Part shown: positions 1-22,648 of the stretch, one piece after another
Layout of the letters: every line of letters starts with the position of its first letter
How positions within the stretch are numbered: position 1 is the stretch's first letter
Assembly (NCBI GenBank): GCA_043228905.1
Contig: JBHGNT010000002.1
Coordinates: forward strand, 22,754,001 to 22,818,000
DNA: 64,000 bases
Direction: 5' to 3'
Source: Azolla caroliniana
Lineage: Eukaryota; Plantae; Polypodiophyta
The notes under the pieces: model-generated
Seen by the model: only the letters and a program-made list of their open reading frames with translations
What the model was told of the DNA's origin: nothing
Databases searched by the model: none
Program-made: the position numbers and the translations under genes

Positions 1-981
1 GCGACACGGCATGTAGAAGCCGTTAACTACTCAGTGTCGGCGGGAATTCGGGTTGGGGGTGATGAGACCCGGAAGGTGAAGGACTCCGGATTCTGGCCGC
101 TAGTGCTGGAAGGCCTCTCCGGAGTTCGGCTGAAGAAGGAAGAGGCGGACCGCGCGGAACAACGGGTCCAGGAGGTCACCGAATGGTACGATCCGGTCGA
201 AGAGAAAACGGGCTTCGTAGAAGCCACTTTCCAGAACTACGAGGCTCTGGTTGAAGACAAACGGGCAGGAAAGGCCAGGTGCGTCGGTCCCCCGCAGAGG
301 TACGAGACCTGGTTCGGACCGAAACCGATCGGTGCCGGCAACCCAGGCGCGCCGGACGGGAAGAAGCAGGTGGGGTTTCGGTTTAGCATCGAAATTGAGA
401 CAACAACGGACCTACGGAAGGTCCTTGAAGAGCGGATCCTCGACAATAAAGTGGAGCTGTCGTTGTGGGAGGTGCTGGGAATCGCCAAGAGGGAGTTCCA
501 CGACTCCATTGTAGACTTGGTGAAGCGGAAGAGGCTCTCGACGGAGACCCTTGTGAGGATCGACGACGTTCCGGAACCGGTGGTGGCCTTGGTAGACCAT
601 GGATCCGAAATCAACCTGATGTCCATAGATTTCTACAAGAGGGGTAAATGGCCGATCAACACCAAGCATGGGTGGAAGATATGCGCGGCAACGTGTGCTA
701 CGGAGGAGCTGCATGGTGCGTGCCTGAATATACACGTAAAGGTCGGTGACGTCGAGATAGATAAACATTTCTTCGTGCAGGAAAAATCGTCGCACCCGGT
801 GATTCTCGGCGAACCATACATTACGGCAGCACGCATGGAGACAAAGGTGTTGGATAACGGTTCGGCGTACGCGCGTGTCAAGAGCCAAGATGGTCAACAT
901 TCCGTCCAAATCATGACCGTATGTCCGAACCATGAGAGGGATCGCGAGACCCTTAGCGGCGACAACCGAGGGGATTTTTAG
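1..981 (+). pseudogene. Element A gag C-terminus + aspartic protease (LVDHGSEIN), with an internal deletion relative to element B
   Basis: ORF 34..981 aligns with the C-terminal half of ORF 8062..10251 and ends GGGGATTTTTAG, like element B. Confidence 0.9.
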
Positions 982-1299
982 AGGGGGCTATCAAGGCGTG
1001 GGGCCGCGGTAGTCCGGACGTACCGGAAGAACCCCACACATGTACAGTAGGTAGGAAGTTTTGGTTCTCCGAAAACGGAGGTTGTACTATAGCCGGCGTC
1101 AGCGGCCGGGAGAGGAAGCGTGCGGAGGAGCGGCTCAGGGGATGCAGAGTCCTCTCCCCCGACGAAGAAATCAGCGGCGCCGTGGAGGCAGTCTCTTTTG
1201 ACGACACTTTGGGCGAGTTGCGAAAGGTGATCGGTGAAGACCTTAGAGAAGACCGGACCGTTTCGTTTAGTTTGATGGGAATGTACGAAGTCATCACGG

Positions 1300-2569
1300 T
1301 GTCGTGTGAATCTTCACACTCTATGTAAAAAAATAATGAAATAATTATTATAGATTAGATTAGTAGCTTACTATAGAAAGATGGATATACTCAAGAGCTT
1401 CAAAATGTATTTTACTATATACAAAATGGAGAAATACATATCAAGTTATGTGAAAATAAAGTTTGAGAAGATAGAGAAATTAGAACTATCCCACATAGAT
1501 AGGAAACTTAAGGCCCTGGCTATATAAGCACCTTTAGCTCCATCATTTTTCATTTGTTCTAAGAGCACTTTGGTCACTTTGTCTTGATGGATGATGGTGG
1601 CCAAATTTCCTAAATCTGGAAACCGGCCGGTAAACAAATCCGGAAACCGGCTGGTAAGCAAATCCGGAAAATGGGTCCGGTAAGCAAATCCGGAAACTGG
1701 CCGATATGCAAAATCGGAACCGGAACCGGCAAGCAAATCGGAACCGGCCAGCAAGCAAAACCGGAACCAAAATTGGTATGCAAACCAGAACCGGAATCGG
1801 TATGCAAATCGGAACCGCCAAGCAAACTGGAACCGGCCGACAAGCAAAATCGGAACCGGCCGGCAAGCAAAACCGGAACCAGAACCGGAACTGGCCGGCA
1901 AGCAAAATGGAACCGGTCGGCGAGGGATTCGGCGATCGGGCGGAACCGGCGACCGTACGAGGTTGGACGCAAATCGAACGGATAAAAGGATCATGTGGCT
2001 ATTTAAAGAAAGGTAAAAGAGACTAAAGTAAAGGTCAAGTGGACGGTCGCATGCAACTAAAGAAAAAGCCATGCAACTAAAAATAGATTCAACAAAAAGA
2101 AAAGCTATGCAACTAAAAGTAGAGGCCATGCAACAAAAAGTGGAGGCATATGATCAACGAGGAACTCCATATATAATTCCATTTTTTTTCCTATACTGGG
2201 ATGCTCTCTCCATATTATATTGTTCTTCTTTTCCTTCGGAGCTCTCTTATCTTATCGAAGCCAAGAACCCTAAATTTCCTTATAGAAGTCATAAAATCCA
2301 AAATTCCTTGTCAAAGCCATATCACTCAAGACTCATAATCTCTTATTTCCTCTAATCTATTATTCTAATCATCTCCATAAGATAAAACTTTTGTAATCCC
2401 AATCTTGGGATTGATTGTAATCTTTCTTTCCCTTTTATTAATGAAATTTGTTAATCTTTCTCATTTCGGTTAATTCTTAGTACATAAATACACGAATTTG
2501 ATATCCTCTAGACAAAGGCCCCGGGGTCTTGCCTCAACGTTCACGTATCCTCGTCGTATTTTCGCGACA
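1300..2569 (+). mobile_element. Solo LTR (1270 bp) of the TGTCG...CGACA family inserted in element A pol
   Basis: Termini TGTCG/CGACA. 4-bp TSD ACGG (1296-1299) / ACAG (2570-2573). 3' end resembles the U5 end of the element B LTR. Confidence 0.88.
1610..1960 (+). repeat. Degenerate minisatellite of GCAAA(T/A)CCGGAA(A)CCGG units inside the solo LTR
   Basis: More than 12 imperfect ~18-25 bp units are visible directly. Confidence 0.85.
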
Positions 2570-3725
2570 ACAGACTTCGAGGAAAGGATCGGGTCGGATC
2601 GGACGGCCCGCGTGGATACAAAGTACAAGACTGTGGACCGGAAGGTGAGGCCAGTCGCGGCACCCTTGCCGAAGGGCAGCGAGGAGCAGATAAAAGGGGT
2701 CACGTCAGACCCAAGTTTATGGAATCCGGCTAACATAGGGCACCGGTTCACCGACATAACGCTACGGGAGCTCAAGGTTGGTGGGGCTGGCTTTCTACTG
2801 CCGGCGGAGGAGGACATGTTTCGGAGAATGATCGGAAGGCATGGGAAAGCCTTCGCATTCTCGCCGGAGTGATCGGGTGCATAGACCTGACGATCGTCGA
2901 ACCGATGGTGATCTTCAAGGGACCGCATGTATCGTGGAATCTCAAACCGATTCTGGTGCCGAGAACTCACATCCCGGAGTTGATGGAACTTCTGAAGCAG
3001 AAGGTGGAGATGGGCATCCTCGAACCGTCGAATGCCCCATATTCGAACCGGTGGTTTACGGTGCCGAAGAAGAACGACACGTTGCGTTTCATTCAGGACC
3101 TGCAACCGGTCAACAGGGTAACCATCCGTAATGCAGGAATCGGACCGACCATAGACGAGATCGCGGAGGCCTTTGCTAGGAGGTCGATTTATTCGGTCGA
3201 TGACTTATACTCGGGGTACGACCAGTTCCAGCTAGCCGTGGATGCGAACCCCTCTCGGCCTAGTACGGATGTGTACCCTACCACAAGGTGGGACGAACTC
3301 GGTGGCGCATATGGTGAACGCAATGAACAAGGTGCTGAGGGACTGCATCCCGAACATCACCATGCCATTCTTGGACGACATCCCGATAAAGGGGTGTCCA
3401 GTGGATGATGCGGATGAGACCGTCGGGCCAGATGGATGCCGGAGGTTCGTCGTGAACCACATCAACGATTGCGAGAAGGTGCTGCAGAGGCTCGAAAGCG
3501 CACGACTCACCTTCTCCGGAGAAAAATCGGCGTTCGGGCAGTCAGAGATCTTGGTGGTCGGACACTTGTCCGGGCCTTACGGTAGGAGACCATCTCCGGC
3601 AAAGGTAGAAGCCATCTCCGCGATGAAGGACGACTGCGGGTCGGTTACGGAGGTCTGCAGATTCTTGGGGGTGTGCGCGTTCTACCACATCTCGATTCCG
3701 CGCATGTTGTGGAGCCGCTCTACGG

Positions 3726-4529
3726 TGTCGAGATATTACGCAAGTGCGTGTGGAATCGAGGCGGGACCGCGGGGGTCTCGAACCAAAGAGCAAGCGAGGG
3801 AGGAGAAAGAGAGAGAACCGGCTACGCAGGACCGGGGATACACAGGGACACGGCCCTTCAGCACGGAGAAGCGAACAGACACCGACACAGACAGATGCGA
3901 ACGACTAAATATGTATATTAACAAAATTGCTAACACGATTACAACCCTCGGTGGGGCACAGGTTGGTTACAACCGAACAGGCCGGCGAACAGATGCCGAT
4001 GCCTGTTCGCTTCGACGCACAAACGGGGTAGCAGGTCGGAGGTGCTGCCGGAAGCACTCGGGCGTTCCTCGAAACAGCGCGAGCCTCCTCGGAACCCTGC
4101 ACAGAAGCTATGGAGCTCGAGAAGGAAGGAAGCACAGAGAGAGAGAGAGAGAGAGAAGCTCCCAGAAACGGTCCGGCAGCACTTCGTCCTCTCCGCGCGA
4201 GATGCCTGCAACAGCCCTTTCCTCCTCTTTTTATAGCCCGACGAGCAGGCCGTCCTGTCAGCTTTATTCCCTGTCCCTTTTAGACAGGGATCCGCTCCGT
4301 CCTTCACGCGTCCGCGTAGTTACGCCGCCGACTCGTACAGTTCCTTCGCTCGCGCGCGCGACCGAAAAGACTGTTCGCGCGGTCTTCGTCTCCACTTGTG
4401 CTAGGGCCCGTTCCTGCCGATTATCCTCCTAATTCGCTTCCGTGTACAACTTGGAGCTTGCGCGCGTGAAGAACCGGTTCCCATGCCTAGGTGCACCGAA
4501 TCCGCCTATGGACGGTTTTCTTCACGACA
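3726..4529 (-). repeat. 3' LTR of element B
   Basis: TGTCG...CGACA termini, 804 bp, near-identical to 10234-11037, adjacent to the PPT. Confidence 0.97.
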
Positions 4530-4544
4530 TCCGCCCCCACCTAA
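4530..4544 (-). other. Polypurine tract of element B
   Basis: TTAGGTGGGGGCGGA on the minus strand immediately before the 3' LTR; identical to element A PPT at 13939-13953. Confidence 0.9.
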
Positions 4545-4600
4545 CCGCGCATCCTCCGGTATGCGCCAAGAGAGTTGGGACGGAGAAAACCGGCCCGTCT

Positions 4601-7600
4601 TCATTCCTCGTTTTCGGATCGTTCGCCACTGCTGACTAGGAGAGCCGGGTCCGGCTCATCGTCATGTCGCTTCTTGAACGCTTTGATCCGCTTCCCTGCA
4701 ACCGGTATCGCCACTCTCGTGCCGTCAAGTTCCGCCAGGTGATATGTCCCGTTGTCATTGGCGCTCCGTACCACGTAAGGCCCAAACCACCTTCGTGCGA
4801 ACTTCCGTGTGGCTCGGTGCTGGTTGTCGAGGCTGCTGTCGTAGACGAGCACCCAGTCACCTTCTTCGATCTTCTTTGGTCGGAGCCGGTGCGTTCGGTC
4901 GAACCTGGCTTTGTTCTTTGCCCTCGCCACCCGGAGCCTCTCCGTAGCCAGTTCCACGTCCTCCGGTCTCCGCTCGAGCTGTCGTATGCGCGCGGCCAAC
5001 AACTCCTCCCGGCTCATCTCGTCCCGCCAGGCGACCGTTGCCCACGAGGAGATCGTCCGTTCCATCGGCATGACCGGCTTCTGGCCGAACATGAGCTCCG
5101 TCGGCATGTACCCGGTTACCGAACTGTGCGTGGTCCGGTCTGCCCACAAAGCATACGGTAGCAGCCGCGGCCAGTTACCGACTTGGCCTCCGCATGCCCG
5201 AACCAAAGCCTTGACGATCGGCCCGTGTCCGCGCTCCACCTTCCCATTTGCCTCCGGATTGTACGCAGTGGTGAGCGAGAGCTTGACTCCCAGCCGGTCG
5301 AACAGCTCCGCGGCTTCTTCGGCGTCCAACTCCCCTCGGTCAGCCACGATCTTCCCGACGCACCCGTACCGGCATATCACGTCTTCGATTAGGAACCGGC
5401 ATACGGCCGCGGTCGTTTTGTTCGGAAGGGCCCGGCCTTCCACTTGGTTCGTCAGATCCTCCCGCGCTAGGACCAGGTACCGCATCTGTCCTACTCCCAT
5501 TGGCATCGTTACCAGATCTACCATCCATTTGAAGTGGATGGTTGGAGGGTACGTGGGGTGAAGCTCGTCCCGATGTCGGACTATGGAGTGCATCTGACAG
5601 CTCTCGCAAGTTGTCACGAACCGATGCACGTCCTGGTACTGCCCCGGCCACCAATACTTCCCCTTCAGTTTCTCAAACGTAGCCCATGTTCCACGGTGTC
5701 CAGCCCAAGGGCTGTCGTGGTAGGCCGTCAGCAGCTCCTCCTGTTCTTCCTTCATCGCCACCACCCGGAGCGGAGCGCCGTCCCTCTTCTTCGGGTGCTT
5801 CCATAGGTAGCCATCCCGGAGAAAGAACCGGTACGCTTTCCTCCGGATCCGGTTGGCCTCGTCCTTCGTCCATGACGCATCGGGCGTCATTGTCTTCAAA
5901 AACCCACCGATCTGCAGCCACTCCCCGTCGTACTTGCTCGCGTCGAAGTCGTTAAGCGCCGGAGTGCTTGTCCCGCCGGTTGTTACATACGCAGTCTCGA
6001 AGAAGTCCACGCCGACCTCTTCGTCCTCCGAGACCATGCCGCCCTCGTCCTCGAATCTCGCCCTTGAAAGCATGTCGGCCATGGCGTTGTCTTTCCCGGA
6101 AATGTGTCGTATTACCGGGTCTAGGGACTTGATGTACGCTATCCACCTGAGCATTGCCAGGTCCGGCGTCGCGCATCCGGAAACCATGCCGAGAATCGGC
6201 ATGCAATCCGTCTCTATGATTACCTCCGTCCCGATCAGATAGTCCTTGTCGGACTTCACCGCCGAAACGATACCCCAGAGTTCGCGCTTAACCTGGGCGT
6301 ATCCTCGCTGCCGTTCGCTGAGGACCTTCGCGCCGAATCGGATCGGAAACCGATTGCCGTCCTCGTCTGCTTGGTTGACGACCCACCCGATTCCGGTCGG
6401 ACTCGTGTCAACCGTTATGTACACTGGGGTGTCCTTCCCGTAGACAGCCTTTCGGAGCGCCGGTGCTGCCGAAAGAGCCTCCTTCAGCTTCCGGACCGAC
6501 TCCGCGTGCTTGTCTAGCCATTCGAATCTTCGCCCTTTCTTCAATAATCCGTACAGCGGCTCCGCGACGTGCGCGTAATGCGGGATCCATATGTGGTAGA
6601 AGGCGCATGCTCCCAAGAATCTTCGTACTTCCGTGACCGAGCTGCAGTCAGGCTTCATCGCGGAGATGGCCTCTACCTTTGCCGGAGACGGTTTCCGGCC
6701 ATATGGCCCGCACAAATGTCCGACCACCATGATTTCCGACTGCCCGAAGGCAGACTTCTCCCCCGAGAAGGTGAGCCTCGTATCCTCTAGCCTTTGCAGC
6801 ACCTTCTCGCAGTCGTCGATGTGCATTACCACGAATCGCCGGCATCCGTCCGGCCCGACCGTCTCGTCCTTCTCTTCTACCGGGCATCCCTTGATCGGGA
6901 TGTCGTCTAGAAACGGCATGGTGATGTCCGGGATGCAGTCCCTCAGCACCTTGTTCATTGCATTCACCATGTGGGCCACCGAGTTGGTCCCTCCTTGCGG
7001 CAGCGTACACATCCGCACTAGGCCGAGGGGAGTTCGCATCGTCGTAATGTCTCTGCTCTCCACGGCTAGCTGGAACTGGTCATACCCTGAGTATAGATCA
7101 CCGACCGAGTAAATCGACCTTCCGGCGAAGGCCTCCGCGAACTCGTCTACGGTCGGTCCGATTCCTGCGTTCCGAATGGTCACCCTATTGACCGGTTGCA
7201 GGTCCTGAATGAAGCGTAATGACCCGTTTTTCTTTGGTACGGTAAACCATCGGTTTGAATACGGGGCGCTCGACGGCTCGAGAATGCCCATATCAACTTT
7301 CTGCTTCAACAGCTCCATCAACTTCGGGATGTGAGCTCTCGGAACCGGAATTGGCTTGAGATTCCACGGTACATGCGGTACCGTGAATATCACCATTGGC
7401 TCTACGATCGTCGGGTCTACGCACCCGATTTCCTCCGGTGAGAATGCGAAGGCTTTCCCGTGCCTTCCGAGCATTCTCCGAAACCGGTCTTCCTCCACCG
7501 GCAGTAGGAACCCGCCCCCACCGATCTTCAGCTCGCGGAGCGTCTCGTTGGTGAAGGTGTGCCCTATGCCGGCCGGATCTCGTAAGCTGGGGTCCGATGC

Positions 7601-8071
7601 AACCCTTTTGGTTCGGGATTCGCTGCCCTCCGGTAAGGGCGCCGCAACTGGCCTCACCTTCCGGTCCACCGACTTGTACTTGGTGCTCACTCGGGCCGTC
7701 CATTCCGACTCGAGCCCTCGACCGAAGTCCGCGATGACTTCGTACATTTCTTCGGAACATACCGGTATCGTCCGGTCTTCGTTAAGGTCTTCTTCGACTA
7801 CCTTCCCCAACATCCCCAAGGTGTCGTCGAAGGAGACTGCCTCCGCGGCTCCGTTGATTCCTTCGTCAGGGCCGAGAACTCCGCACGCCCGAAGTCTCCC
7901 CTCCGTCTTTGTTTTCTCTCGGCCGGTGATGCCGACCATCGTCCATGCTCCGCTGTCGGAGAAGCAAAATTTCCTACCTATTGTACACGGGTTTATCGTA
8001 CAGATGTGGGGTTTTTCCGGAGCATCCGGACTGTCGCGGCCCCACGCCTTGGCAGTCCTCTCTAAAAATCC
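4601..8071 (-). CDS. pol: Element B pol (RT, RNase H, integrase with GPY motif, no chromodomain), in the -1 frame relative to gag-PR
   Basis: ORF 4601..7939 (1112 aa); the frame stays open upstream to the slippery site at 8071. RT LPQG and FLDD motifs, RNase H DTS, integrase HHCC and D,D,E. Confidence 0.95.
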   Translation of the reverse strand, partial: GFLERTAKAWGRDSPDAPEKPHICTINPCTIGRKFCFSDSGAWTMVGITGREKTKTEGRLRACGVLGPDEGINGAAEAVSFDDTLGMLGKVVEEDLNEDRTIPVCSEEMYEVIADFGRGLESEWTARVSTKYKSVDRKVRPVAAPLPEGSESRTKRVASDPSLRDPAGIGHTFTNETLRELKIGGGGFLLPVEEDRFRRMLGRHGKAFAFSPEEIGCVDPTIVEPMVIFTVPHVPWNLKPIPVPRAHIPKLMELLKQKVDMGILEPSSAPYSNRWFTVPKKNGSLRFIQDLQPVNRVTIRNAGIGPTVDEFAEAFAGRSIYSVGDLYSGYDQFQLAVESRDITTMRTPLGLVRMCTLPQGGTNSVAHMVNAMNKVLRDCIPDITMPFLDDIPIKGCPVEEKDETVGPDGCRRFVVMHIDDCEKVLQRLEDTRLTFSGEKSAFGQSEIMVVGHLCGPYGRKPSPAKVEAISAMKPDCSSVTEVRRFLGACAFYHIWIPHYAHVAEPLYGLLKKGRRFEWLDKHAESVRKLKEALSAAPALRKAVYGKDTPVYITVDTSPTGIGWVVNQADEDGNRFPIRFGAKVLSERQRGYAQVKRELWGIVSAVKSDKDYLIGTEVIIETDCMPILGMVSGCATPDLAMLRWIAYIKSLDPVIRHISGKDNAMADMLSRARFEDEGGMVSEDEEVGVDFFETAYVTTGGTSTPALNDFDASKYDGEWLQIGGFLKTMTPDASWTKDEANRIRRKAYRFFLRDGYLWKHPKKRDGAPLRVVAMKEEQEELLTAYHDSPWAGHRGTWATFEKLKGKYWWPGQYQDVHRFVTTCESCQMHSIVRHRDELHPTYPPTIHFKWMVDLVTMPMGVGQMRYLVLAREDLTNQVEGRALPNKTTAAVCRFLIEDVICRYGCVGKIVADRGELDAEEAAELFDRLGVKLSLTTAYNPEANGKVERGHGPIVKALVRACGGQVGNWPRLLPYALWADRTTHSSVTGYMPTELMFGQKPVMPMERTISSWATVAWRDEMSREELLAARIRQLERRPEDVELATERLRVARAKNKARFDRTHRLRPKKIEEGDWVLVYDSSLDNQHRATRKFARRWFGPYVVRSANDNGTYHLAELDGTRVAIPVAGKRIKAFKKRHDDEPDPALLVSSGERSENEE
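8006..8071 (-). promoter_or_regulatory. Putative -1 programmed ribosomal frameshift signal (G GAU UUU + pseudoknot)
   Basis: Heptamer 8071-8065, 6-nt spacer, stem GGACUG/CAGUCC, loop GUGGGG complementary to downstream CCCCAC. Same architecture in element A at 972-1037. Confidence 0.75.
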
Positions 8072-10188
8072 TCTCGGTTTTCGGAACCGAGGGAATCGTA
8101 GTTACGTTCGTGGTTCGGCCGTACCGTCAGAAACTGGACCGAATGGCGCCCGTCTTGGCTTTTGACCCTTGCGTAGGCCGAACCATTGTCCAGCACCTTG
8201 GTCTCCATCCGCGCCGCCGTGATGTACGGCTCTCCCAGTATGACCGGATGCGAAGACGTTTCCTGCACGAAGAACTGCTGGTCGATCTCGACGTCGCCGA
8301 TCTTGACTCGCACATTCGGACAGGCCCCGTGCAGCTCCTCGGTGGCGCGCGTTGCCGCCCTTATTTTCCACCCGTGCTTGGTGTTGATCGGCCATTTGCC
8401 CTTCTTATAGAAGTCCATGGACATCAAGTTGATCTCCGATCCGTGGTCCACCAAAGCTATCACCGGTTCCTGGACATCGCCGATCTTCACCGGGGTTTCC
8501 GTGGTCGCTCGGGCCCAGTGTGGTCTCGAATAGTGGCTTTCCGCCCACTCGTCTCCCAGCGCCATGTCGTCTAGGTGCGTCGTCCGCACTCCCACCGGTC
8601 TTTCCGGTTCTGTCTCCGTCGACAGCCTCTTCCGTTTCACCAAGTCCACGATGGAGTCGTGGAACTCCTTCTTGGCGATTCCCAGCACCTCTCGTAACGA
8701 CAGCTCCACCTTGCTGTCGAGGATCCGTTCCTCCAGGACCTTTCGTAAGTCCGTGGTCCTTTCTATCTCCGTCCCCAGACGGTACCCGCCCTTCTGGGGT
8801 CTATCTTGCGTGCCGGCCCCGCCGGCTTCGTCCCGTCGTGGCCCGGACCAGGTCTCGTATCGTTGTGAGGGCCCGGTCGTCCCGGGTCTCCCCACCCGCT
8901 TCTCTTCTACCAGAGCCTCGTAGTTCTGGCAAGCGGCCTCCACGAAGCCCGTCCTTTCCTCGACCGGGTCGCTCCACCCGGTCATCTCCCGTACCCGTTT
9001 CTCCGCACGGTCCGATTCCTCCCCTTTAAGCCTTGCACCGGCAAGGCCTTCCAGCATCGTCGGCCAGAATCCGGCTCTGCTTTCCCTTCGGGCCTCGCCG
9101 CCCCCGACTCGAATGCCGGCCGACGCCGAGTAGTGGACGGTTTCCGCGTGTCGGGCCGCCGCCTCTTCCATCAACCTTTTCATACCACCTTTCCCGTCGT
9201 TTCGGCTCAGGGCCCTTCGGGTGTCGCTGGCATGCACCCGTCCTTCCCACAGGTACACCACCCTGTCCCTTAGCGCCTCCGCGAAGTCGCCGCAGTCCTT
9301 CCGAATGTGGCCGACTTCATCGCACCACATGCACCTGTTTCCTGCCGCCGGCCGTCGGTCACGAGCCGGTTCGCCTTCTTCCCTTCGGGCCTGCGCGATT
9401 TGGAGGTCCTTTATCGCCTTCGTCAATTCCTCCAGGGCCGCTCCTCCGGTTGAGCCTCTGACTACGCCGGTCGAAGCCGAACTGGTTTCCAACCACTCTC
9501 CGGTCTCTTCCTTTCGCACCCGTGGCGCTGGTTCGAACTTCCTTGCTGCGACCGAGCCCGACCCGGTTACCCCGTTATCCGCCCATTCTCGCCGTTTGTC
9601 GAAACGGCCACAGACTTTCTTGACAGCTGCCCAGTCGGTAGTGAGCCCGTCTTCGGTTTCCAGCAAGAGGCCCACTTGCTCCCGATCCCGCTCATCGACC
9701 GACTTGACAAACAGCAAGACCCGGCTCGTGTCCAGGATGGTTCGGTCGAGCGCCGAAAGGCGCGCAAAGTTTTCCTCGAACTCCCGGAGGAGTGCCGAAG
9801 CGTTTCTTCCCTTCCCCGGGGACTCCACCCATTCCATGAACCTTCGCTTCGAAAGCCGGAGCGCGTCGTCCAGCCCGTATTTCTCTAGGAGCCGACCTTC
9901 GAACTCCTCCCAGGTACGGCTCTCCGCCCGCACCTCGAGCACCTCCGCATGGATGCCCGGCATTGCGACTCGGGGAAATCCGGCAAGACGCCTTTCTTCC
10001 GGAATGTCCCGCATCAACATTTCCGCACCGTAGGACGCCAGATACTTCGTGGCATCCCTCCCATCGAACCGGCCGATCGTGCCGACAACCGCCTCAATAG
10101 CTCTGTCGAGGGCACCGGTGCCCTCGCGCGCGTTTACAATCCGATCCACGGCCGAAGCCATGGCCTCTGCAAGATCCGACCCCCTCAT
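8062..10188 (-). CDS. gag: Element B gag-protease polyprotein
   Basis: First ATG after the PBS is at 10188. CCHC knuckle CMWCDEVGHIRKDC; protease LVDHGSEIN...VILGEPY; TAG at 8062-8064. Confidence 0.93.
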   Translation of the reverse strand: MRGSDLAEAMASAVDRIVNAREGTGALDRAIEAVVGTIGRFDGRDATKYLASYGAEMLMRDIPEERRLAGFPRVAMPGIHAEVLEVRAESRTWEEFEGRLLEKYGLDDALRLSKRRFMEWVESPGKGRNASALLREFEENFARLSALDRTILDTSRVLLFVKSVDERDREQVGLLLETEDGLTTDWAAVKKVCGRFDKRREWADNGVTGSGSVAARKFEPAPRVRKEETGEWLETSSASTGVVRGSTGGAALEELTKAIKDLQIAQARREEGEPARDRRPAAGNRCMWCDEVGHIRKDCGDFAEALRDRVVYLWEGRVHASDTRRALSRNDGKGGMKRLMEEAAARHAETVHYSASAGIRVGGGEARRESRAGFWPTMLEGLAGARLKGEESDRAEKRVREMTGWSDPVEERTGFVEAACQNYEALVEEKRVGRPGTTGPSQRYETWSGPRRDEAGGAGTQDRPQKGGYRLGTEIERTTDLRKVLEERILDSKVELSLREVLGIAKKEFHDSIVDLVKRKRLSTETEPERPVGVRTTHLDDMALGDEWAESHYSRPHWARATTETPVKIGDVQEPVIALVDHGSEINLMSMDFYKKGKWPINTKHGWKIRAATRATEELHGACPNVRVKIGDVEIDQQFFVQETSSHPVILGEPYITAARMETKVLDNGSAYARVKSQDGRHSVQFLTVRPNHERNYDSLGSENREDF

Positions 10189-10210
10189 CTTCTGCTCTTC
10201 TGCCGCCTCT

Positions 10211-10228
10211 TTCACGTCGGGTTCACCA
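10211..10228 (-). other. Primer binding site complementary to tRNA-Trp
   Basis: Minus strand TGGTGAACCCGACGTGAA is complementary to the 3' 18 nt of plant cytosolic tRNA-Trp (...TTCACGTCGGGTTCA-CCA, recalled sequence); 5 nt from the LTR. Confidence 0.85.
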
Positions 10229-10233
10229 AAGGA

Positions 10234-11037
10234 TGTCGAGATATTACGCAAGTGCGTGTGGAATCGAGGCGGGACCGCGGGGGTCTCGAACCAAAGAGCA
10301 AGCGAGGGAGGAGAATGAGAGAGAACCGGCTACGCAGGACCGGGGATACACAAGGACACGGCCCTTCAGCACGGAGAAGCGAACAGACACCGACACAGAC
10401 AGATGCGAACGACTAAATATGTATATTAACAAAATTGCTAACACGATTACAACCCTCGGTGGGGCACAGGTTGGTTACAACCGAACAGGCCGGCGAACAG
10501 ATGCCGATGCCTGTTCGCTTCGACGCACAAACGGGGTAGCAGGTCGGAGGTGCTGCCGGAAGCACTCGGGCGTTCCTCGAAACAGCGCGAGCCTCCTCGG
10601 AACCCTGCACAGAAGCTATGGAGCTCGAGAAGGAAGGAAGCACAGAGAGAGAGAGAGAGAGAGAAGCTCCCAGAAACGGTCCGGCAGCACTTCGTCCTCT
10701 CCGCGCGAGATGCCTGCAACAGCCCTTTCCTCCTCTTTTTATAGCCCGACGAGCAGGCCGTCCTGTCAGCTTTATTCCCTGTCCCTTTTAGACAGGGATC
10801 CGCTCCGTCCTTCACGCGTCCGCGTAGTTACGCCGCCGACTCGTACAGTTCCTTCGCTCGCGCGCGCGACCGAAAAGACTGTTCGCGCGGTCTTCGTCTC
10901 CACTTGTGCTAGGGCCCGTTCCTGCCGATTATCCTCCTAATTCGCTTCCGTGTACAACTTGGAGCTTGCGCGCGTGAAGAACCGGTTCCCATGCCTAGGT
11001 GCACCGAATCCGCCTATGGACGGTTTTCTTCACGACA
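10234..11037 (-). repeat. 5' LTR of element B
   Basis: 804 bp, adjacent to the PBS, TATAAAA box on the minus strand near 10735-10743. Confidence 0.97.
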
Positions 11038-11996
11038 ACGGGCTATTGAAGAAAGGGCGTAGGTTCGAGTGGAGGACGGAGCACACGGAGTCGGTACGAA
11101 GACTAAAGGAGGCGCTTACGGTAGCGTCGGCTCTCCGTAAAGCGGTTTACGGCAGGAATGTCCCCATTTGCGTGACAGTGGACACGAGCCCGACCGGGAT
11201 CGGGTGGGTAATCAATCAGGAGGACAAGGACGGCATACGATTCCTCATCCGGTTCGGGGCGAAGGTATTGAGCAAGCGGCAGCAAGGATACGCCCAAGTT
11301 AAGCGCGAGCTTTGGGGTATCATTTCGACAGTCAAGGCCGACAAGGACTATTTGATCGGGATAGAGGTGATCATCGAGACGAACTGCCTGCCGATACTCG
11401 GCATGGTTTCCGGATGCGCAACGCCGGACCTAGCAATGCTCCGATGGATAGCGTACATTAAGTCCCTGAACCCGGAGATACGGCACATCTCCGGAAAGGA
11501 TAACACCATGGCTGACATACTTTTGAGAGCGAGGTTCAACGACGAAGACGAGATGGTTTCAGATGACAAAGAAGTCGGCGAGGACTTCTTCGGGTCGGCT
11601 AACGTAACGACGAGGAAAAGGGACACTCCGGCGCTTAACGAATTCGACAAAAGCAAGTACGACAGGGAGTGGCTCCAAATCGGGAGGTTCCTATGGGCGA
11701 TGACTCCGAACGCAGCGTGGACGAGAGAAGAGGCGAGCCAGGTACGGAAGAAGGCGTACCGATTCTTCCTACAGGATGGGTGCATATGGAGGCACCCAAA
11801 GAAAAGAAATGGCATCCCACTCCGAGTAGTGGCAAAGAAAGAGGAACAGGAGGAACTACTGGCGGCATTTCACGAGAGTCCCTGGGCCGGGCACCGCGGA
11901 ACGTGGGCCACGTTCGGGAAGCTGAAGGAGAAGTACTGGTGGCCGAGGCTGTACCAGGACGTGCAACGGTTCGTAACGACTTGCGAGAGCTGTCAG

Positions 11997-12323
11997 ATGC
12001 ACTCCGTAGTCCGACATCGGGATGAGCTACACCCGACTTACCCGCATGCGGTCCATTTCAAATGGATGGTGGACTTGGTAACGATACTGATGGGAGTAGG
12101 ATAGATGCGATACCTGGTGCATGCACGGGAAGACTTAACGAACCAGGTGGAAGGCCATGCACTCCGTAGTCCGACATCGGGATGAGCTACACCCGACTTA
12201 CCCGCATGCGGTCCATTTCAAGTGGATGGTGGACTTGGTAACGATACTGATGGGAGTAGGATAGATGCGATACCTGGTGCTTGCACGGGAAGACTTAACG
12301 AACCAGGTGGAAGGCCATGCACT
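11997..12323 (+). repeat. 160-bp tandem duplication in element A integrase
   Basis: 11997-12156 is repeated at 12157-12316; junctions carry ATGCACT at 11997, 12157 and 12317. Confidence 0.92.
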
Positions 12324-12430
12324 GCAGAACAAGACAACTGCGGCGGTATGTCGGTTCCTGATCGAAGAGGTAGTGTGTCGGTACGGGTGCGTCGGGAGGA
12401 TAGTGGCGGACCTGGGAGAGCTGGATGCGT

Positions 12431-13137
12431 TGTCGTAGTGTATATCGTACACTACGTGAAAAAGTAAAAATAATATAACCGATTTAATTACATATAAATA
12501 AATAAAATAAGAATATCAAGATATTTATCACGTGCATAGGGCAAGATTTGAACCTTGTACCTCCACGTAAATAAACCCCAACTTTACCATTGTAATAACT
12601 TATCTTTAGTGTTATAAATATAGATTTAATACGCATAAGACATTTATTTACACATACCTTTATTAAAAGCTAAAAATCATGTATTCTTTAGAGTGTAAAT
12701 ATTTTATTTACACGTGCCATTAAAAGTGACTCATGCACATCTAGCGTGCATGAGCCCTATATTTAGGAAATGACAAAGCATCACATGCACATTTAGTGTG
12801 CATGGACACTTTAAGCGAAAAAGCATGAAGCCATGTTTAGCCTCTTCCATCTTTATATAAGGAGGAGAGAAATATGTATAAGGTTGTTGATTAATATAGA
12901 AGAATTGATCAATCTAATATATTCGTGGGATTCACGAATTTTGCCATAAAAAATTACTCTTATAATCTAAATATTGTTTTAAAATACACTAAACTCGTGG
13001 GATTCACGAGATTGCTATCTTACTTCTCTTTCCACTATTCATAACTAGCCTTAAGTTGTATTCCTCTTCCTCCTAGTCCAAAACCTCGGCGGTTCCCACC
13101 CGACTCACGCAATGATCCGGAGCCGAAGGGCTCGACA
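12431..13137 (+). mobile_element. AT-rich solo LTR (707 bp) of the TGTCG...CGACA family inserted in element A integrase
   Basis: Termini TGTCG/CGACA. TSD GCGT (12427-12430) / GCGC (13138-13141). Host reads GELDA|QEAEELF across it. TATA at ~12854. Confidence 0.88.
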
Positions 13138-13953
13138 GCGCAGGAAGCTGAGGAGTTGTTCGACCGGCTAGGGGTCAAACTCTCCCTCACTATGACGTAC
13201 AATCCGGAGGCGAACGAGAAGGTAGAGCGTGGGCACGGGCCGATCGTAAAGGCGTTGGTGCGTGCATGCAGAGGGCATGTCGAGAATTGGTCGCGGCTCC
13301 TTCCTTATGCACTATGGGCGGACCGAACTACACACAGTTCGGTGATAGGGTTTATGCCGGCAGAGCTGATGTACAGACAAAAGCCGATCATGCCGGTGGA
13401 ACAAACAGTTTCTTCATGGGCGGCGGTAGATTGGAAGGACAAGATGAGCCGAGAGCAGTTGCTGTCGGCGTGGATTCGACAACTCGAGCGGAGGCCAGAG
13501 GACGTGAAACGGGCCGTGGAGAAGCTTCGGTTGGCAAGGTTGAAGAACAAAGGGCGGTTTGACCGGACTCACCGGCTACGAACGTAGAAAATCGAGGAAG
13601 GCGACTGGGTCCTAGTGTATGACAACAGCCTCAACAACCAGCATAGGGCAACGCGGAAGTTTGCACGGAGGTGGTTCGGGCCTTACGTGGTGACAGGCGC
13701 CAACAACAACGGGAGCTACCATCTTGCGGAGCTCGACGGTACAAGGATGGCAATACCGGTAGCGCGGAAGAGGGTCAAAGCATTTAAGAAACGACACGAG
13801 TGCGAGCCGGATCCGGAAAGCATGGACGGCGACGACGGACGGTCCGAGGCGGATGACGATCAGGAAGACGAGGAGTAAAGCATGGACCGGTTTTCTCCAG
13901 CAAGAGCCCAATTTTGGCGCATGCCGGTGGATGCGCAGTTAGGTGGGGGCGGA

Positions 13954-14332
13954 TGTCGTGAAGAAAACCGTCCCTAAGCGGAATCCAAGTTTAGCATGTG
14001 TAAACCGGCTCTTACACGCGAGCACACTTTTCGTTGTATAGTAAGTAGGTAGGTACAAGTCGGTAGAGGTGAAATCCTAGGTAGCGCGCATTCAATAGGG
14101 AGAGAATTGAGATGTATCTCTGTCCGAAAAGATAGAGAATTAATGTGATGTAACAGATGATAACGACCTCCCTCCTTGAGCTATAAAAGAGAGGGAGAGG
14201 AATGAAAAGGAGGATCGCGCGTTGGCAAGGAGGAAGTGTTGCTGTAGAACCGAGTGCCGAGATCTCTCTCCCCCAATCGTCGTTCTCTGCGGGTGTCAGG
14301 AGTTTGCTGCCTCTGCTTTGTGGACAACCCGT
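13954..14332 (+). repeat. Truncated 3' LTR of element A
   Basis: Follows the PPT, begins TGTCGTGAAGAAAACCGTCC like the sense start of the element B LTR, TATAAAA at 14182, broken at CCGT by LTR C. Confidence 0.88.
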
Positions 14333-14969
14333 TGTCGAGGTATTCCTCCCGGATGCGTGGAATGAGGCGGGACCTCAAGGGTCCTGTACCGAAGAGCAAG
14401 AGAGAAAGGAAAAGAGACCCACTAGGTGCGAGCGTAGATTCACAGGGACACGGCCCTTCGACACAAAGACACGAGTGGGACAGCGACACGGAGAGACACG
14501 AATGTATGTATGTATTAACAAAGACAACAACAAGAACACGAAAGCAACAAAACACGAAGTCGGTTACAACCGAACAGGCCGGCGAACAGATGTCGATGCC
14601 TGTTCGTAAACGTACAGAAAGAAAGGAGCAGGTTGGAGGTGCTGCCGGAAGCACTCGGGCATTCCTCAGAGCAGTGCGAGCCTCCCGAAACCTGCACAGA
14701 AAGAAGCTATGGAGTTTGCGAGCCAAAGAGAGAGAGAAGCCTTCGCCCACAAACCGACAGCACTTCGTCCTCGACTCTCCGCGATCCCTTCCTCCTCCTC
14801 GTCTCCCTCCTCTTATAGGCAAAAAGGGAGCCGTTTCCTATTAACTCCCTACCTACCGAATCTGCCTACCTAGGATCTTCTATGTACAACATAAGGCGCA
14901 CGTGCATGAAGAGCCGGTTCCTACGCTCCGGTGCACCGATTCCGCTTGTGGACGGTTTTCTTCACGACA
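14333..14969 (-). mobile_element. LTR C (637 bp), same family as B, with non-matching flanks (probable recombinant solo LTR)
   Basis: TGTCG...CGACA, colinear with the B LTR. Left flank CCGT lies in LTR A; right flank ACGG lies in the RT of element D. Confidence 0.88.
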
Positions 14970-17907
14970 ACGGATCAATGGTGTCAGGTTCTTCACGAAG
15001 ATCGACTTACGGGGCATATAACCTCGTACGGATCCGACCAGGAGACGAATGGAAGACCGCGTTTCGCACCAGATATGGGCACTTCGAGTATACGGTCATG
15101 CCGTTCGGCCTCACTAATGCACCGGCAGTCTTCCAGCACATGGCTAATGATATATTCCGAGATCTATTGGATGATTGTTTGATCATCTATTTGGATGATC
15201 TACTGGTTTATTCAAAGACCCAAGAAGAACATGATTCTCATGTACTATTAGTACTAAAACGACTTCGAGAACATGGTCTGTATGCAAAGCTGGAAAAATG
15301 TAGTTTCGGGTGCAACCAAGTGGAATTTCTCGGCTACATCATTTCGTCAGAAGGCATCTCCATGGACCCAGCTAAGGTCAAAACGGTGGTAGAATGGCAG
15401 ACTCCACGTTCGGTGCGGGATGTGCAATGCTTCCTAGGCTTTGCCAATTTTTACCGGAAGTTCATACAAGATTACTCAAAGATCGTTCTACCTCTCACAC
15501 AACTTACCAGGAAGGGACAACTGTTCATTTGGTCTAAAGAAACGGACGTGGCTTTCGAGAATCTTAAAAAGGCATTTACATCGGCTCCAATTCTAGCTCA
15601 TGTCGATCCGGAAAAACCATTTATTATCGAAGCTGACGCATCGGATTTTGCATTGGGGAGCATTCTGTCACAATAGGGGAATGATGAGAAGCTACATCCT
15701 GTGGCTTTTCACTCACGCAAGTTTGACGCCGCCGAAATCAACTACGAAATTCATGATAAGGAGCTATTGGAAATAGTGGATTCTTTTATGCAATGGAGGC
15801 ATTTTCTGGAGGGATCCTCTCATCCGGTCACCGTATTTAGTGACCACAAGAACCTTGCCTACTTTCAGGATGCTCGTGTGTTGAATCGACGTCAAGCTCG
15901 GTGGGCCCACTTCCTCACGCGTTTCGACTTCAAAATTACATATCGTCCGGGGAAGCACCAAGGGAAGGCCGATGCATTATCACGGCGTTTGTACCTAGCA
16001 CCCCGTCCCGGCGAGCCAGCTTTCGATAACCAAAAACAAGTCATCTTGGGACCGGCACGACTACAAGCAACAAAGATCTTTGACATGCCCATGGATTCCC
16101 GCGTTATTGATACCATACGCGAAGACTTGAAGATAGATGCATTTGCCCAAGCTATACTAGCACAAATTGATCCCTCTCGAGCGTTGTGTTCACAGTCGCA
16201 ACCACCAGGCACGGACTATCGGCAATTCAAATACCATGATGGATTACTCTTCTTTAAAGAACTTTTGTATGTTCCTAATGGTTCTTGCCGCCTTCAAGTA
16301 GTACAAAACTGTCATGACACATATGCAGCTGGGCATTTTGGTAGTACTAAAACACTACATTTAGTACAACGATCATTCTGGTGGCCCTGTATGCGACAAT
16401 TTGTCGAGGATTTTGTTCGGACTTGTGATACATGCTGCAGAGCGAAAATGCCAAGGCATCATCCATATGGTTTATTAGAACCATTACCAATTCCAAGCAA
16501 GCCGTGGCAATCCATTGCTCTAGACTTCATCACACATCTTCCAGTCTCTAAAGGGTTCAAAGCGATTCTAACGGTGGTCGATCGATATACGAAGATGGCT
16601 CATTTCTTGCCATGTACTAAGGAGATCTCCAGTGAAGACACTGCCAAAATTGTCATGCGTGAAGTATGTCGGCATCATGGACTTCCCGATAGTATCATCA
16701 GTGATCGTGGACCCCAGTTCGTGTCAAAATTCTAGAAGCACCTTTTTAACATGCTCAAGGTCACTTGTAACCTCTCCTCCGGCTACCACCCATAAACCGA
16801 CGGCCAAGCCGAACAAACCAATCAAACGCTGGAGCAGTATCTGCGGTGCTTTCTTAGCTATCATCAGGATGACTGGGTAGATATTCTCCACTTCGCCGAA
16901 TTTGCCTATAACAACTCTATCCATGCATCCACGAAAGTTACGCCATTTTATGCTTATACGGGATGTCACCCCCGGTGGTGTGTACTTGAAACCCCAGAGG
17001 TGTCCACAAATCCTTGCGCAGAGGATCGTTTGGAAAGGTTACGCAAGATACGAGCGGATTTATCTACTCATCTCCAACAAGCTCAACAAACACACAAGGT
17101 TTATGCGGATCGTCATCGACTCTCATCTAGTTTTAACATTGGAGATCGGGTATGGCTACTCCGACAACACATCAAGACTACTCGCCCATGCGAGAAGTTG
17201 GATTATCGACGATTAGGTCCTTTCCGTATTATCGGAAAGATTAATGATGTCGCTTTTCGTCTTGATCTACCTCCACAACTTCGGATACATCCGGTGTTTC
17301 ATAGTTCTCTCCTCGAACCCTATCAAGAAAGCATCATCCCATGACGTATTACACAGCCTCCACCCCCGATCGAGCTTGAAGATGGACCTGAGTACGAGGT
17401 TGCCGCCATCCTTGATTCCAAGCTTGTTCGCAACAAGCTCTACTATCTAGTCGACTGGCTAGGATATAGTCCCAGCGACCGTACTTGGGAACCGATAGAG
17501 AATGTCACCAATGCTCGTGCTCTTCTTGAAGACTTCCATCTTCAATATCCAGACAAACTGGGTCCTCAATCCAAAACGACTCGTTACACTCGTCGTTTTA
17601 AAGGGGGGATAGTGTCATGATATTGCAAGACTCAAACCCATGACCTTATACTACATGGGTCGAGCTCTCAACCATTAGACTATACATTGTAATACATAGA
17701 TATTATTTTCATTTATGTTTTATTATAGAAAATTGATGTATATTCCAGATTTCTCTGGAACATTCTAGAAACTTCAGGAGTATTCCTTAGAACACTATAA
17801 AAGGAGGCACAAGGCATTATTTCGAACCAAATTGGTTCAACGCCAGTCTTAAGCCTCCTAGCTACTGTACATTTTCTTCACATAATATATATCTTTTCCT
17901 ATCATCA

Positions 17908-17938
<31 letters not shown>

Positions 17939-18037
17939 TCACTCACTCTTTCCTTCTCTCGAGAGTTCTTCACCTCTCTTAGTACTAATACTTCTTTTAG
18001 TACTAATTCCTTCTCTGTCTTAGTACTGTTCCTAACA
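14970..18037 (+). mobile_element. Element D: 5'-truncated Tcn1-like chromovirus (RT-RH-IN-chromodomain pseudogene + 3' LTR 17613-18037)
   Basis: KIDLRGAYN, YLDD, EADASDFALG, GPF and chromodomain EYEVAAILD...YLVDWLGY...TWEP. In-frame stops near 15674, 16733, 16793 and 17342. PPT AAAGGGGGGATAG, LTR TGTCA...TAACA. Confidence 0.9.
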
Positions 18038-18458
18038 ATCACCCATGCGCGCAAGGGAGCAAGATGGAGATTCTACCGGAAGCACACGGGCGTTCCACGG
18101 AGCAGAATCAGCCTCTTGAGAACCTGCGCAAAAGAAAGCTATGGAGAACAACAGAGAAGAAGAACTCGGTCCCAGTCCGATAGCACTTCGTCCCCTCTCG
18201 CGCGCGATACCTTCTCTCCCCCGTCTCCCTCTCTTTTATAGCTCAAGGAGGGAGACCGTTTTCACCCGTTTACATCACATAAATTCTCTGTCCTTTCGGA
18301 CAGAGATACTCCTCGATTCTCCCTATAGAATATTGCTACCTAGGATTTGACTTTTGTGCCTACCTATCTACTATACAACAAGGGGCGTGCCCACGTGTAA
18401 GGGCCGGTTCACACGCGCTATACACAGTTTGCGTCTGGGGATGGTTTTCTTCACGACA
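18038..18458 (-). mobile_element. LTR E: partial LTR of the TGTCG...CGACA family, interrupted by element D
   Basis: Homologous to LTRs A/B/C (GGAAGCAC.CGGGCGTTCC, CACTTCGTCC); ends TTTTCTTCACGACA followed by ACGG. Confidence 0.85.
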
Positions 18459-19279
18459 ACGGTTTTGTGGACCTTTTACAATCCTCGAATGCATTGGTTC
18501 ATTAGTATATCATCTCGCTCTTCCTGATGGCTATGAAATCCATCCAGTTTTTCATGTAAGTCGTCTAAGAGAACTTCTTCGTTCTAGTGACAATACAATG
18601 ACAACTGAAACTCTGGTTACTTCTGAAGAATTAGCTTCTAAACTACATGTACCAGAAAGAATTCTTGATGTTAAAACAAAAAAATTGTGTTCTAAAATAA
18701 TCCGAGAATTTAAAATAAAATGGATGGATAACTTTTTCAAAGATGCCACATGGGAACGCGAAAATACTCTTAGAATTAACTTCCCTAACTTTCCATTGCA
18801 AGAGTGCAATGTTTTAAAGAGGGGGGAGTATGTTACGGGCATGACCATATCCCATGGTAAGTTTATCATAGTATTCTATACACGTGGATAAAGTGTGAGG
18901 GTTAAACGAGAGTGTAAAGAAGGAAAGGATTACTTTTAATCCTTGGGATAGGGACGACCCATTAGGCCAAGTGTGAACTTGCTTGGGGGCCTTAAGTCTG
19001 GCTATAAATATGAGGCCTAGCTACCCTCATTTGACATGTTATCGACTACATCAAGATTCCGTCATTGTGGTGGGTCAACTCTTGTAGCGAGCGCGCCGGC
19101 ACCAGGTACGACTCGACGCCACGACGGTGGTATGGGACGCCGATCGAGGCTTGAGTCCGTCTCGATCTCTTCGCTTAGGGGTGATCAAGTGGATCAGTAC
19201 CCTTCTTTCTCTCTCTCCTTTCTTATTTTATATCTATTATATCCTTATCTCAAGCTTACATTAGTCGCTAGTTGTAACA
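18459..19279 (+). mobile_element. Element F: 3' end of a Reina/Tekay-like chromovirus (integrase C-terminus, group II chromodomain, 3' LTR 18831-19279)
   Basis: RFCGPF...IHPVFHVSRL and PERILD...IKW...DATWE. PPT AAAGAGGGGGGAG; LTR TGTTAC...GTAACA. Confidence 0.85.
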
Positions 19280-21712: not shown

Positions 21713-21848
21713 ATCTGATGATGATACTTTGTGAAAGGCTTGTTTCTCAAAAACATTCGCAGTGGCCGCCTAAGAGCTTTCGCTTTTCTTTGTGAAAGAG
21801 CTTGAGAGCTAATGCTGCTTTCACACCCTTCCTTGGATATCTGAAGAT
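21713..21848 (+). ncRNA. U14: U14 box C/D snoRNA, copy 1
   Basis: Box C ATGATGA, GGCTTGTTTCTC, 18S-antisense CATTCGCAGT, Y-domain hairpin, CCTTCCTTGGAT + box D CTGA, terminal stem ATCT/AGAT. Confidence 0.92.
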
Positions 21849-22112
21849 CCTCCATCAATTTGCCTGATATTTCGTTTCTTCATCTGCCTTAGTTTATACC
21901 TCTATAAGTAATAGTGGAAGTGGAGACGTAGTTTTTCTAGGTCCTATAAATTCTGTCTGAAAAGGCTCCTTTGATAATATTTACTCACATTTTAACACCA
22001 AATACATCTTCTTGGCGCTCAATTTCGATTATGAAAGAGCCCTGAAACCTAATCTCAGGTATTTTTTCGCAATCCATACCTCTCCGTTCATTCTTTGAAT
22101 AACGCTGCTTTA

Positions 22113-22248
22113 ATCTGATGATGATACTTTGTGAAAGGCTTGTTTCTCAAAAACATTCGCAGTGGCCGCCTAAGAGCTTTCGCTTTTCTTTGTGAAAGAG
22201 CTTGAGAGCTAATGCTGCTTTCACACCCTTCCTTGGATATCTGAAGAT
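22113..22248 (+). ncRNA. U14: U14 box C/D snoRNA, copy 2
   Basis: Same sequence as copy 1 at +400. Confidence 0.92.
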
Positions 22249-22512
22249 CGTCCTTTAATTTCCCTGATATTTCGTTTCTTCATCTGCCTTAGTTTATACC
22301 TCTATAAGTAATAGTGGTAATGGAGATGTAATTGTCGTATGTCCTATAAATCCTGTCTGAAAAGGCTCCTTTGATAAGATTTACTCACATCTTAACGTCA
22401 AATATATCTTCTTGGTGCTCAATTTCGATTATGAAAGAGCCCTGAAACCTAATCTCAGGTATTTTTTCGCAATTCATACCTCTCCGTTCATTCTTTGAAC
22501 AACGCTGTTTTA

Positions 22513-22648
22513 ATCTGATGATGATACTTTGTGAAAGGCTTGTTTCTCAAAAACATTCGCAGTGGCCGCCTAAGAGCTTTCGCTTTTCTTTGTGAAAGAG
22601 CTTGAGAGCTAATGCTGCTTTCACACCCTTCCTTGGATATCTGAAGAT
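22513..22648 (+). ncRNA. U14: U14 box C/D snoRNA, copy 3
   Basis: Same sequence as copy 1 at +800. Confidence 0.92.

Follow-up and report, generated by a model that had tools for sequence, protein, structure and literature searches.

The first 19 kb (1–19 kb) of a 64,000-nucleotide stretch of Azolla caroliniana DNA (contig JBHGNT010000002.1, positions 22,754,001 to 22,818,000, hereafter the window) is a stack of nested Ty3/gypsy retrotransposons of 44–60% G+C, and the other 45 kb has 34–41% G+C. Several of the nested insertions share long terminal repeats (LTRs) with the ends TGTCG...CGACA and lie at 4-bp target sites with a central CG. It is probable that these are tRNA-Trp-primed elements of the Phygy type, inserted by an integrase that acts with a symmetric 4-bp stagger at V-CG-B sites (V being any base but T, and B any base but A), and that the density of CpG in the surrounding DNA suffices for their nesting. 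CG-centred 4-bp integration has already been described for Phygy, where it takes up a single sentence and one cell of a table (Neumann et al., 2019), and the present observation is a rediscovery in another plant. A literature search for the mechanism, or for NCGN target sites elsewhere, found only that paper (PMC6317226), and the mechanism of CG integration appears to be unstudied in the literature.

Target sites in the window

The elements and LTRs of the transposon block, with the 4-mers that flank each insertion, were assigned as follows.

1–13953, + strand: element A, Phygy-type Ty3/gypsy element and outer host, collinear with element B across each insertion
1300–2569, + strand: solo LTR 'C', 1270 bp, 40% G+C, internal short tandem repeats; 4-bp duplication established by the empty site in B; flanks ACGG 1296–1299 and ACAG 2570–2573
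3726–11037, − strand: element B, full-length Phygy-type element, 7312 bp, assigned from its LTRs, primer binding site, polypurine tract, open reading frames (ORFs) and duplication; flanks ACGG 3722–3725 and ACGG 11038–11041
12431–13137, + strand: solo LTR, 707 bp, 33% G+C, AT-rich; 4-bp duplication established by the empty site in B; flanks GCGT 12427–12430 and GCGC 13138–13141
13954–14332, + strand: 3' LTR of element A, exact U3 start at 13954, interrupted at 14332 by the next insertion
14333–14969, − strand: complete LTR, 637 bp, both termini intact; non-matching flanks in different hosts, CCGT 14329–14332 (in the 3' LTR of A) and ACGG 14970–14973 (in the reverse transcriptase of chromovirus D)
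14974–18036, + strand: chromovirus D, a host, with RNase H, integrase and chromodomain lying between mid reverse transcriptase and the 3' LTR; Pfam RVT_1, RNase H, Integrase_H2C2, rve, SH3_Tf2-1 and Chromo
18037–18458, − strand: truncated LTR 'G' (U3 half), U3 start with one mismatch, 88% identity to the LTR in sequence L076; flank ACGG 18459–18462, inside chromovirus F
18463–18888, + strand: chromovirus F, oldest of the hosts, represented by the integrase SH3 domain and the chromodomain at the polyprotein end; Pfam SH3_Tf2-1 and Chromo

The initial annotation had reported six junctions with a central CG. All six were recovered with complete TGTCG/CGACA ends and with the CG in the central position (6/6), and the accompanying claim that LTRs of differing length and composition share such sites was borne out both in the window and among the relatives described below. 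CG occupies 7.7% of the dinucleotide positions in 1–19030, and the probability of finding it by chance at the centre of 6/6 sites is ~2e-7. The boundaries of the LTRs were set independently of the flanking 4-mers, from the junctions with the polypurine tract and the primer site. Element B could also be used as a paralogous reference for the empty sites of the insertions into element A, namely LTR 'C', B itself and the LTR at 12431–13137. Dropping one copy of the 4-mer gave gapless collinearity between A and B at 3/3 flanked insertions, while keeping both copies left gaps totalling 4 bases. Since the removal of one copy restores the collinearity, the duplication is exactly 4 bp. One of the duplication copies (2570–2573) has changed from ACGG to ACAG, which is a CpG-type transition.

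The 4-mers on either side of the LTR at 14333–14969 are reverse complements of one another and form no direct repeat. They lie in two hosts and represent two separate integrase joints, consistent with CCGT 14329 and ACGG 14970 having been counted separately at the outset. The favoured reading of this LTR is unequal recombination between two like-oriented insertions, and it looks as though the event would have deleted the rest of the 3' LTR of A together with the 5' half of chromovirus D. The hosts D and F had been named as chromoviruses and both gave Chromo domain matches; likewise no copy of the family was seen in 19031–64000, as had been stated.

A wider sample of junctions

Metagenome contigs were scanned with the 19 conserved bases that open U3, a pattern that contains no information on the flanks, and the 120 stretches returned were grouped by source study. 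Sixty-five contigs came from one European Nucleotide Archive (ENA) study (ERZ1034375–ERZ1034427), and the other 55 matches, which were chance occurrences in unrelated DNA, served as a control. The LTRs of the ENA contigs are 74–89% identical to those of the window, and the contigs therefore represent a related plant and not the same genome. The ENA set comprised 67 matches, from which 18 that followed a polypurine tract (3' LTRs) and 2 that followed degenerate tracts were removed to leave 47 junctions. These are independent, as no pair of flanks was >50% alike over 40 nt.

The 4-mer was NCGN at 43/47 junctions of the related plant, where the CG frequency of the flanks was 3.3% (P ~1e-58). The 43 sites were ACGT (15), ACGG (6), ACGC (6), GCGT (5), CCGT (5), GCGC (2), CCGG (1), TCGT (1), GCGG (1) and ACGA (1); the four remaining junctions were CCAT, ACAT and CTGG, which look like decayed CpG, and CTAT. 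The excess of CG was confined to a single offset (43/49, compared with 0–5/49 at the neighbouring offsets), and in the control NCGN was found at 7/51 of the chance occurrences of this 19-mer. Among the ENA contigs, three to four solo LTRs, including those in L045, L100 and L114, carried the same 4-mer on both sides. Five full elements on the chromosomes of the liverwort Riccia sorocarpa were flanked by ACGA, ACGC and, in three cases, ACGT, and the long ENA contig L006 gave ACGC and ACGT. When all sources were combined NCGN was present at 57/61 junctions.

The motif is V-CG-B with ACGT as the best site, T in the first position and A in the last being nearly excluded. The first duplicated base of the 47 junctions was A in 27, C in 10, G in 8 and T in 2, and the last was T in 28, G in 9, C in 7 and A in 3, giving a palindromic pattern. 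Measured against the CG sites that these flanks offer, ACGT was enriched 6.0-fold, ACGG/CCGT 2.9-fold and ACGC/GCGT 2.7-fold. Of the available CG sites 56% begin with T or end with A, yet such sites received only 2/43 insertions (P ~7e-13).

Two other explanations of the 4-mers were weighed against these data. The CG could belong to misplaced LTR ends, which themselves contain CG (TGTCG/CGACA), or could have arisen by chance in host DNA that is rich in CpG. The polypurine tract and primer-site junctions fix the LTR ends, many of the related-plant flanks are AT-rich, and an artefact of the boundaries or of chance was ruled out by the single-offset peak of CG and by the exactly four duplicated bases of the empty-site test; the probability left to this explanation is negligible. 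The initial annotation had further proposed ACGG/CCGT as the favoured target, and of that proposal the intrinsic need for a central CG at a 4-bp duplication stood while the preference for this 4-mer did not. As a specific, non-palindromic target of the family, ACGG/CCGT would account for 5/6 window sites, and the class is enriched over the CG-site background of the related plant as given above. The 47-junction sample nevertheless rules it out as the specific target, with ACGT as the top site (15/47) and ACGC/GCGT equal to ACGG/CCGT at 11 each. ACGG-class sites also made up ~6/19 of a hand count of copies with the window type of U3 start and were found at 0/5 of the Riccia elements. In the transposon DNA of the window the ACGG class is 4.5 times as abundant as ACGT (180 sites compared with 40), which lifts its expected share of insertions to 35%. 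It is thus very improbable that ACGG/CCGT is a target in its own right, and we read the 5/6 of the window as in part a reflection of the abundance of ACGG in GC-rich transposon DNA and, beyond the expected share, as a modest, post hoc excess of sampling.

Element B and its lineage

The LTRs of element B (3726–4529 and 10234–11037) have 2 differences in 804 bp, neither of which is at a CpG. The primer binding site (10213–10228, 16 nt) is reached from the U5 end CGACA via TCCTT, and the polypurine tract (4530–4541) adjoins TGTCG. We take the 16-nt site to be complementary to the 3' end of plant tRNA-Trp; the same site, or one differing by a single base, is present in L001–L004, L127 and L128. 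L129 and L006 carry a second, non-Trp type of primer site, presumably that of tRNA-Thr, a published minor type. The internal region of 5704 bp is filled to ~98% by two ORFs, with no extra ORF and no RNase H of the archaeal type. The gag-protease ORF (8062–10251), which also matches DUF4100 (Pfam), lies upstream of an ORF (4601–7939) that encodes reverse transcriptase, RNase H and integrase and contains RVT_1, RT_RNaseH, Integrase_H2C2 and rve in Ty3/gypsy order. In agreement with the chromodomain-less integrase of the initial annotation, the Chromo domain was not found in the B polyprotein by Pfam at E <= 0.01, whereas clear Chromo matches were given by chromoviruses D and F. Similarly the Pfam search did not find SH3_Tf2-1 in B, though it is present in D and F, nor did it find a methyl-CpG binding domain (MBD) or other reader domain in the B polyprotein.

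The two ORFs of B are in different frames (7940–8064), and in L002 they overlap by one base (4240). This arrangement suggests frameshifting or a similar form of recoding and not damage.

Among the best 120 matches listed, the proteins nearest to those of B come from metagenome contigs, with 80–90% identity. The nearest named proteins in that list are dozens from Riccia sorocarpa and R. fluitans at 50–71%, and the further named matches are one fragment from the fern Ceratopteris at 56% and one protein of the fungus Smittium at 42%. The Ceratopteris relative is a fragment without LTRs. The fungal integrase, from Smittium culicis (Kickxellomycotina; P0346, sequence L131), has 42% identity over 94% of the B integrase, and its contig ends within the element.

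In the table of Neumann et al. (2019, Mobile DNA 10:1, PMC6317226) Phygy comprises 186 elements of 7656–9968 bp with a 4-bp duplication in 100% (NCGN), a tRNA-Trp primer site in 81% and a tRNA-Thr site in 6%. Jedlicka et al. (2019, PMC6911290) also found that 4-bp duplications predominate in Phygy, and that Phygy inside Tcn1 chromoviruses is the commonest repeated nested pair in Physcomitrium. The elements described here share with Phygy the lack of a detected chromodomain, the NCGN duplication of 4 bp, the tRNA-Trp primer site, a short element nearly filled by its polyprotein, occurrence in non-seed plants and frequent nesting in chromoviruses. They differ in that Phygy was described from Physcomitrium patens, while the present copies are from another land plant and have relatives in Riccia, with a single further one in the fern Ceratopteris, and in that the publication gives NCGN alone, the finer V-CG-B pattern with ACGT first coming from the present analysis. 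The best explanation of the TGTCG...CGACA elements would therefore be that they are of the Phygy type, an assignment made from the tabulated sequence features.

The other lineages compared were more distant in their features. Selgy of Selaginella (Neumann et al., 2019) is likewise a short non-chromovirus with a 4-bp duplication, but it is primed by tRNA-Ala, measures ~5 kb and has no reported NCGN, whereas B is primed by tRNA-Trp, measures 7.3 kb and has NCGN. Chromoviruses carry a chromodomain at the C-terminus of the integrase and none was detected in B. The errantiviruses (gypsy, ZAM and Idefix), including ZAM with its env gene, have env as a third ORF and an insect host, while a third ORF would not fit in B and the relatives of B are in land plants, with the one fungal match.

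Nesting and CpG density

The transposon block (1–19030) contains 1465 CG sites in 19 kb, or 7.7 per 100 bp, with an observed/expected ratio of 1.11. The other 45 kb contains 700, or 1.56 per 100 bp, with a ratio of 0.45 (range 0.32–0.66). The AT-rich LTRs have a ratio of 1.09 and, unlike the unique and genic DNA, are not depleted. As unique DNA is CpG-depleted and young transposons are not, usable sites are 4–5 times denser per base in transposons. From the CpG counts alone, the probability that 6/6 insertions fall in the transposon block is 0.096, or 0.064 when weighted by site class, and selection against genic insertions would raise it further. This site density suffices for the nesting seen here without sensing of chromatin or methylation. 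The flanks of the related plant had a median of 41% G+C and 3.1 CG per 100 bp. Approximately 14/47 had <=1.7 CG per 100 bp and were AT-rich, like the unique DNA of the window, and protein homology to LTR retrotransposons was found in 7/47.

The initial annotation had suggested that the integrase treats CpG, possibly methylated, as a safe-haven signal. In that explanation insertions are actively steered into transposons by an integrase, or a partner of it, that detects methylated CpG or heterochromatin. It would fit the window, where 6/6 sites are in transposons and none in the 45 kb of CpG-poor DNA, as well as the ACGG to ACAG transition, the three related junctions that resemble decayed CpG, and the Phygy–Tcn1 nesting of Physcomitrium (Jedlicka et al., 2019, PMC6911290). 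There is also a precedent for reading of methyl-CpG in Copia elements of arthropods that have captured an MBD (de Mendoza et al., 2019, PMC6673714). The concept that a retrotransposon might land in methylated, CpG-dense DNA is shared, but those elements have an MBD while none is detectable in B, and the signal here is a 4-bp motif at the cut site and not a regional one. The occupancy of the window is predicted by CpG density alone at P = 0.06–0.10, and the flanks of the related plant include the CpG-poor, AT-rich ones and only the 7/47 with retrotransposon homology. A 4-bp logo this tight and palindromic speaks for direct contact where the DNA is cut, and decay of CpG between the LTRs of B was rejected as a sign of methylation, the two differences lying outside CpG. 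Because CpG density explains the data and no MBD or chromodomain is detectable in the polyprotein, a methyl-CpG sensor is not needed, and we regard active steering as unlikely. What stood of the nesting claim is that all six window sites are in transposons, while confinement of the family to transposons or to CpG-rich DNA is not supported by the related-plant flanks. A milder form of the claim holds, in which an integrase that requires CG, acting in a CpG-eroded genome, has a 4–5-fold higher rate of landing per base in young transposons.

Integration mechanism

The V-CG-B motif is a sharpened form of the V-YR-B rule (Y pyrimidine, R purine) of retroviral integrases with a 4-bp stagger. The 4-bp duplications of prototype foamy virus (PFV), murine leukaemia virus (MLV), porcine endogenous retrovirus (PERV) and xenotropic MLV-related virus (XMRV) are centred on YR, and T is disfavoured at position 0, as is A at +3. 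The target DNA in the PFV complex is sharply bent, which unstacks its central step, and Arg329 and Ala188 touch bases (PMC4422553, PMC4005685). The PFV consensus is KWK\VYRBMWM (Serrao et al., 2015, PMC4422553). When the B integrase was compared with solved structures the best match was that of PFV (E = 4e-20), ahead of Ty3. The PFV and MLV integrases thus resemble the present one in the 4-bp duplication, the palindromic pattern, the pyrimidine-purine centre and the disfavour of T first and A last; they differ in that the retroviral integrases have a weak preference and tolerate any YR step, while here CG is present at about 91% of sites.

The 4-bp stagger, the two-fold symmetric preference and the near-obligate central CG recur across LTR families of widely differing composition and across distant hosts. 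The integrase complex, which is probably two-fold symmetric, cuts the target 4 bp apart and accepts almost only CG-centred sites. By analogy, the Phygy-type intasome would use the same geometry as the retroviral integrases with a 4-bp stagger, and the narrowing of YR to CG would call for additional base-specific contacts to both C:G pairs. A candidate residue lies in the integrase core of B (5300–5330, − strand), where a Glu three places after the second catalytic Asp aligns with Ala188 of PFV and Ser119 of type 1 human immunodeficiency virus (HIV-1), a position that contacts target DNA. This Glu is part of a DRGEL[D/N] motif that is invariant in the 75/120 homologues captured by a pattern anchored on the catalytic region; the corresponding sequence is DRGEMN in the Smittium relative and DRGPQF in chromovirus D. 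In the flanks of the related plant no marked preference is seen 3 bp beyond the cut, and for this reason the Glu may not be what reads the CG. It is doubtful, though it has some chance of being correct, that the integrase evolved base-specific and possibly methylation-sensitive reading of the CpG step through lineage-specific changes of its target-binding surfaces such as this Glu or a divergent C-terminal domain. If that were true, it would be the most sequence-selective LTR integrase known in plants, and the elements would form a natural system in which the erosion of CpG in a genome feeds back on the landing sites of new transposons.

Selection of a CG-containing target by an LTR-element integrase itself has been shown for ZAM, with the sequence CGCGCg (Faye et al., 2008, PMC2527525). 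This errantivirus of insects uses a 6-bp motif and a second binding site, while the present elements lack env, need the central CG only and are not close relatives.

The following observations weigh against the identification of these insertions as Phygy-type elements whose integrase requires V-CG-B and whose nesting follows CpG density. At 7312 bp, element B is 344 bp under the published minimum for Phygy, the only tabulated feature from which it departs. No Physcomitrium patens protein was among the best 120 matches listed in any search, the search with the integrase only included. A SAC3B-like gene in the window is nearest to a fern protein, yet the named relatives of the retrotransposon are mostly from liverworts. 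The ACGG class at 5/6 window sites exceeds the share of 35% expected from the measured weights (P = 0.02, a post hoc value). Finally, metagenome assembly favours junctions in unique DNA, which is better resolved by assemblers, and the share of flanks outside transposons is therefore biased upward.

Further features of the nested elements

Element A passes beyond the left end of the window, and its own sequence consists of 1–1299, 2570–3725, 11038–12430 and 13138–13953. Its gag-protease ORF (34–978) has a DUF4100 match (Pfam), its polypurine tract (13942–13953) adjoins TGTCG, and its 3' LTR has 88% identity to LTRs in L083 and L099. The integrase region of A contains a tandem duplication of 160 bp in perfect register (11997–12316) with 99% identity.

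In L056 an LTR related to 'C' is followed directly by a primer site of the tRNA-Trp type, which places the 'C' type of LTR in the same lineage. The interior of 'C' (1610–1920) contains arrays of short GC-rich tandem units of the CCGGAA/AAGCAAA type, and short GC-rich tandem units of the CCGGCGTCCGGCG type are found near the 3' end of L005, which has an AT-rich LTR of the same lineage. In L022 the end of an LTR related to that at 12431–13137 is followed by GCGG. LTR 'G' is severed at 18036 by the 3' LTR end of chromovirus D. At position 1336 of L125, from the related plant, a family member lies at AACGA within an F-like chromovirus, while the window copy of that region (18886–18910) is uninterrupted, so that the two paralogous copies provide a natural filled and empty site.

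Other features of the window

A run of long ORFs at 31685–38274 (+ strand), including a 717-aa ORF that is a SAC3B-like exon, represents a SAC3/GANP gene of the SAC3B-like type. The best named homologue is from the fern Adiantum nelumboides (41%), followed by those of Ginkgo, Cryptomeria and Welwitschia (31–34%) and of angiosperms (~30–33%); there was no bryophyte protein among the 16 best clusters checked. Taken with the named relatives of the retrotransposon, this affinity marks the host as a land plant and probably not one of the seed plants. Three copies of SNORD14, the U14 box C/D small nucleolar RNA (snoRNA), were identified with Rfam at 21713–22648; they have identical scores and a spacing of exactly 400 bp, forming a tandem cluster of which a 400-bp direct repeat at 21535/21935 is part. 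In the window Rfam gave only the U14 snoRNAs and ARAGORN gave no tRNA.

Significance

The present analysis adds to the published description that the CG-centred trait extends to Riccia sorocarpa and to a plant from metagenomes that is close to the host of the window, and that the motif is finer than NCGN, being palindromic, with ACGT first and with T and A excluded at its ends. It also places this motif at the extreme end of the retroviral V-YR-B rule and gives a 4–5-fold bias per base toward young transposons from CpG density alone. For annotation of the Phygy-type lineage the NCGN duplication is a convenient marker, and a plant integrase that is ~90% dependent on one dinucleotide would offer a clean model for how an intasome reads its target DNA.

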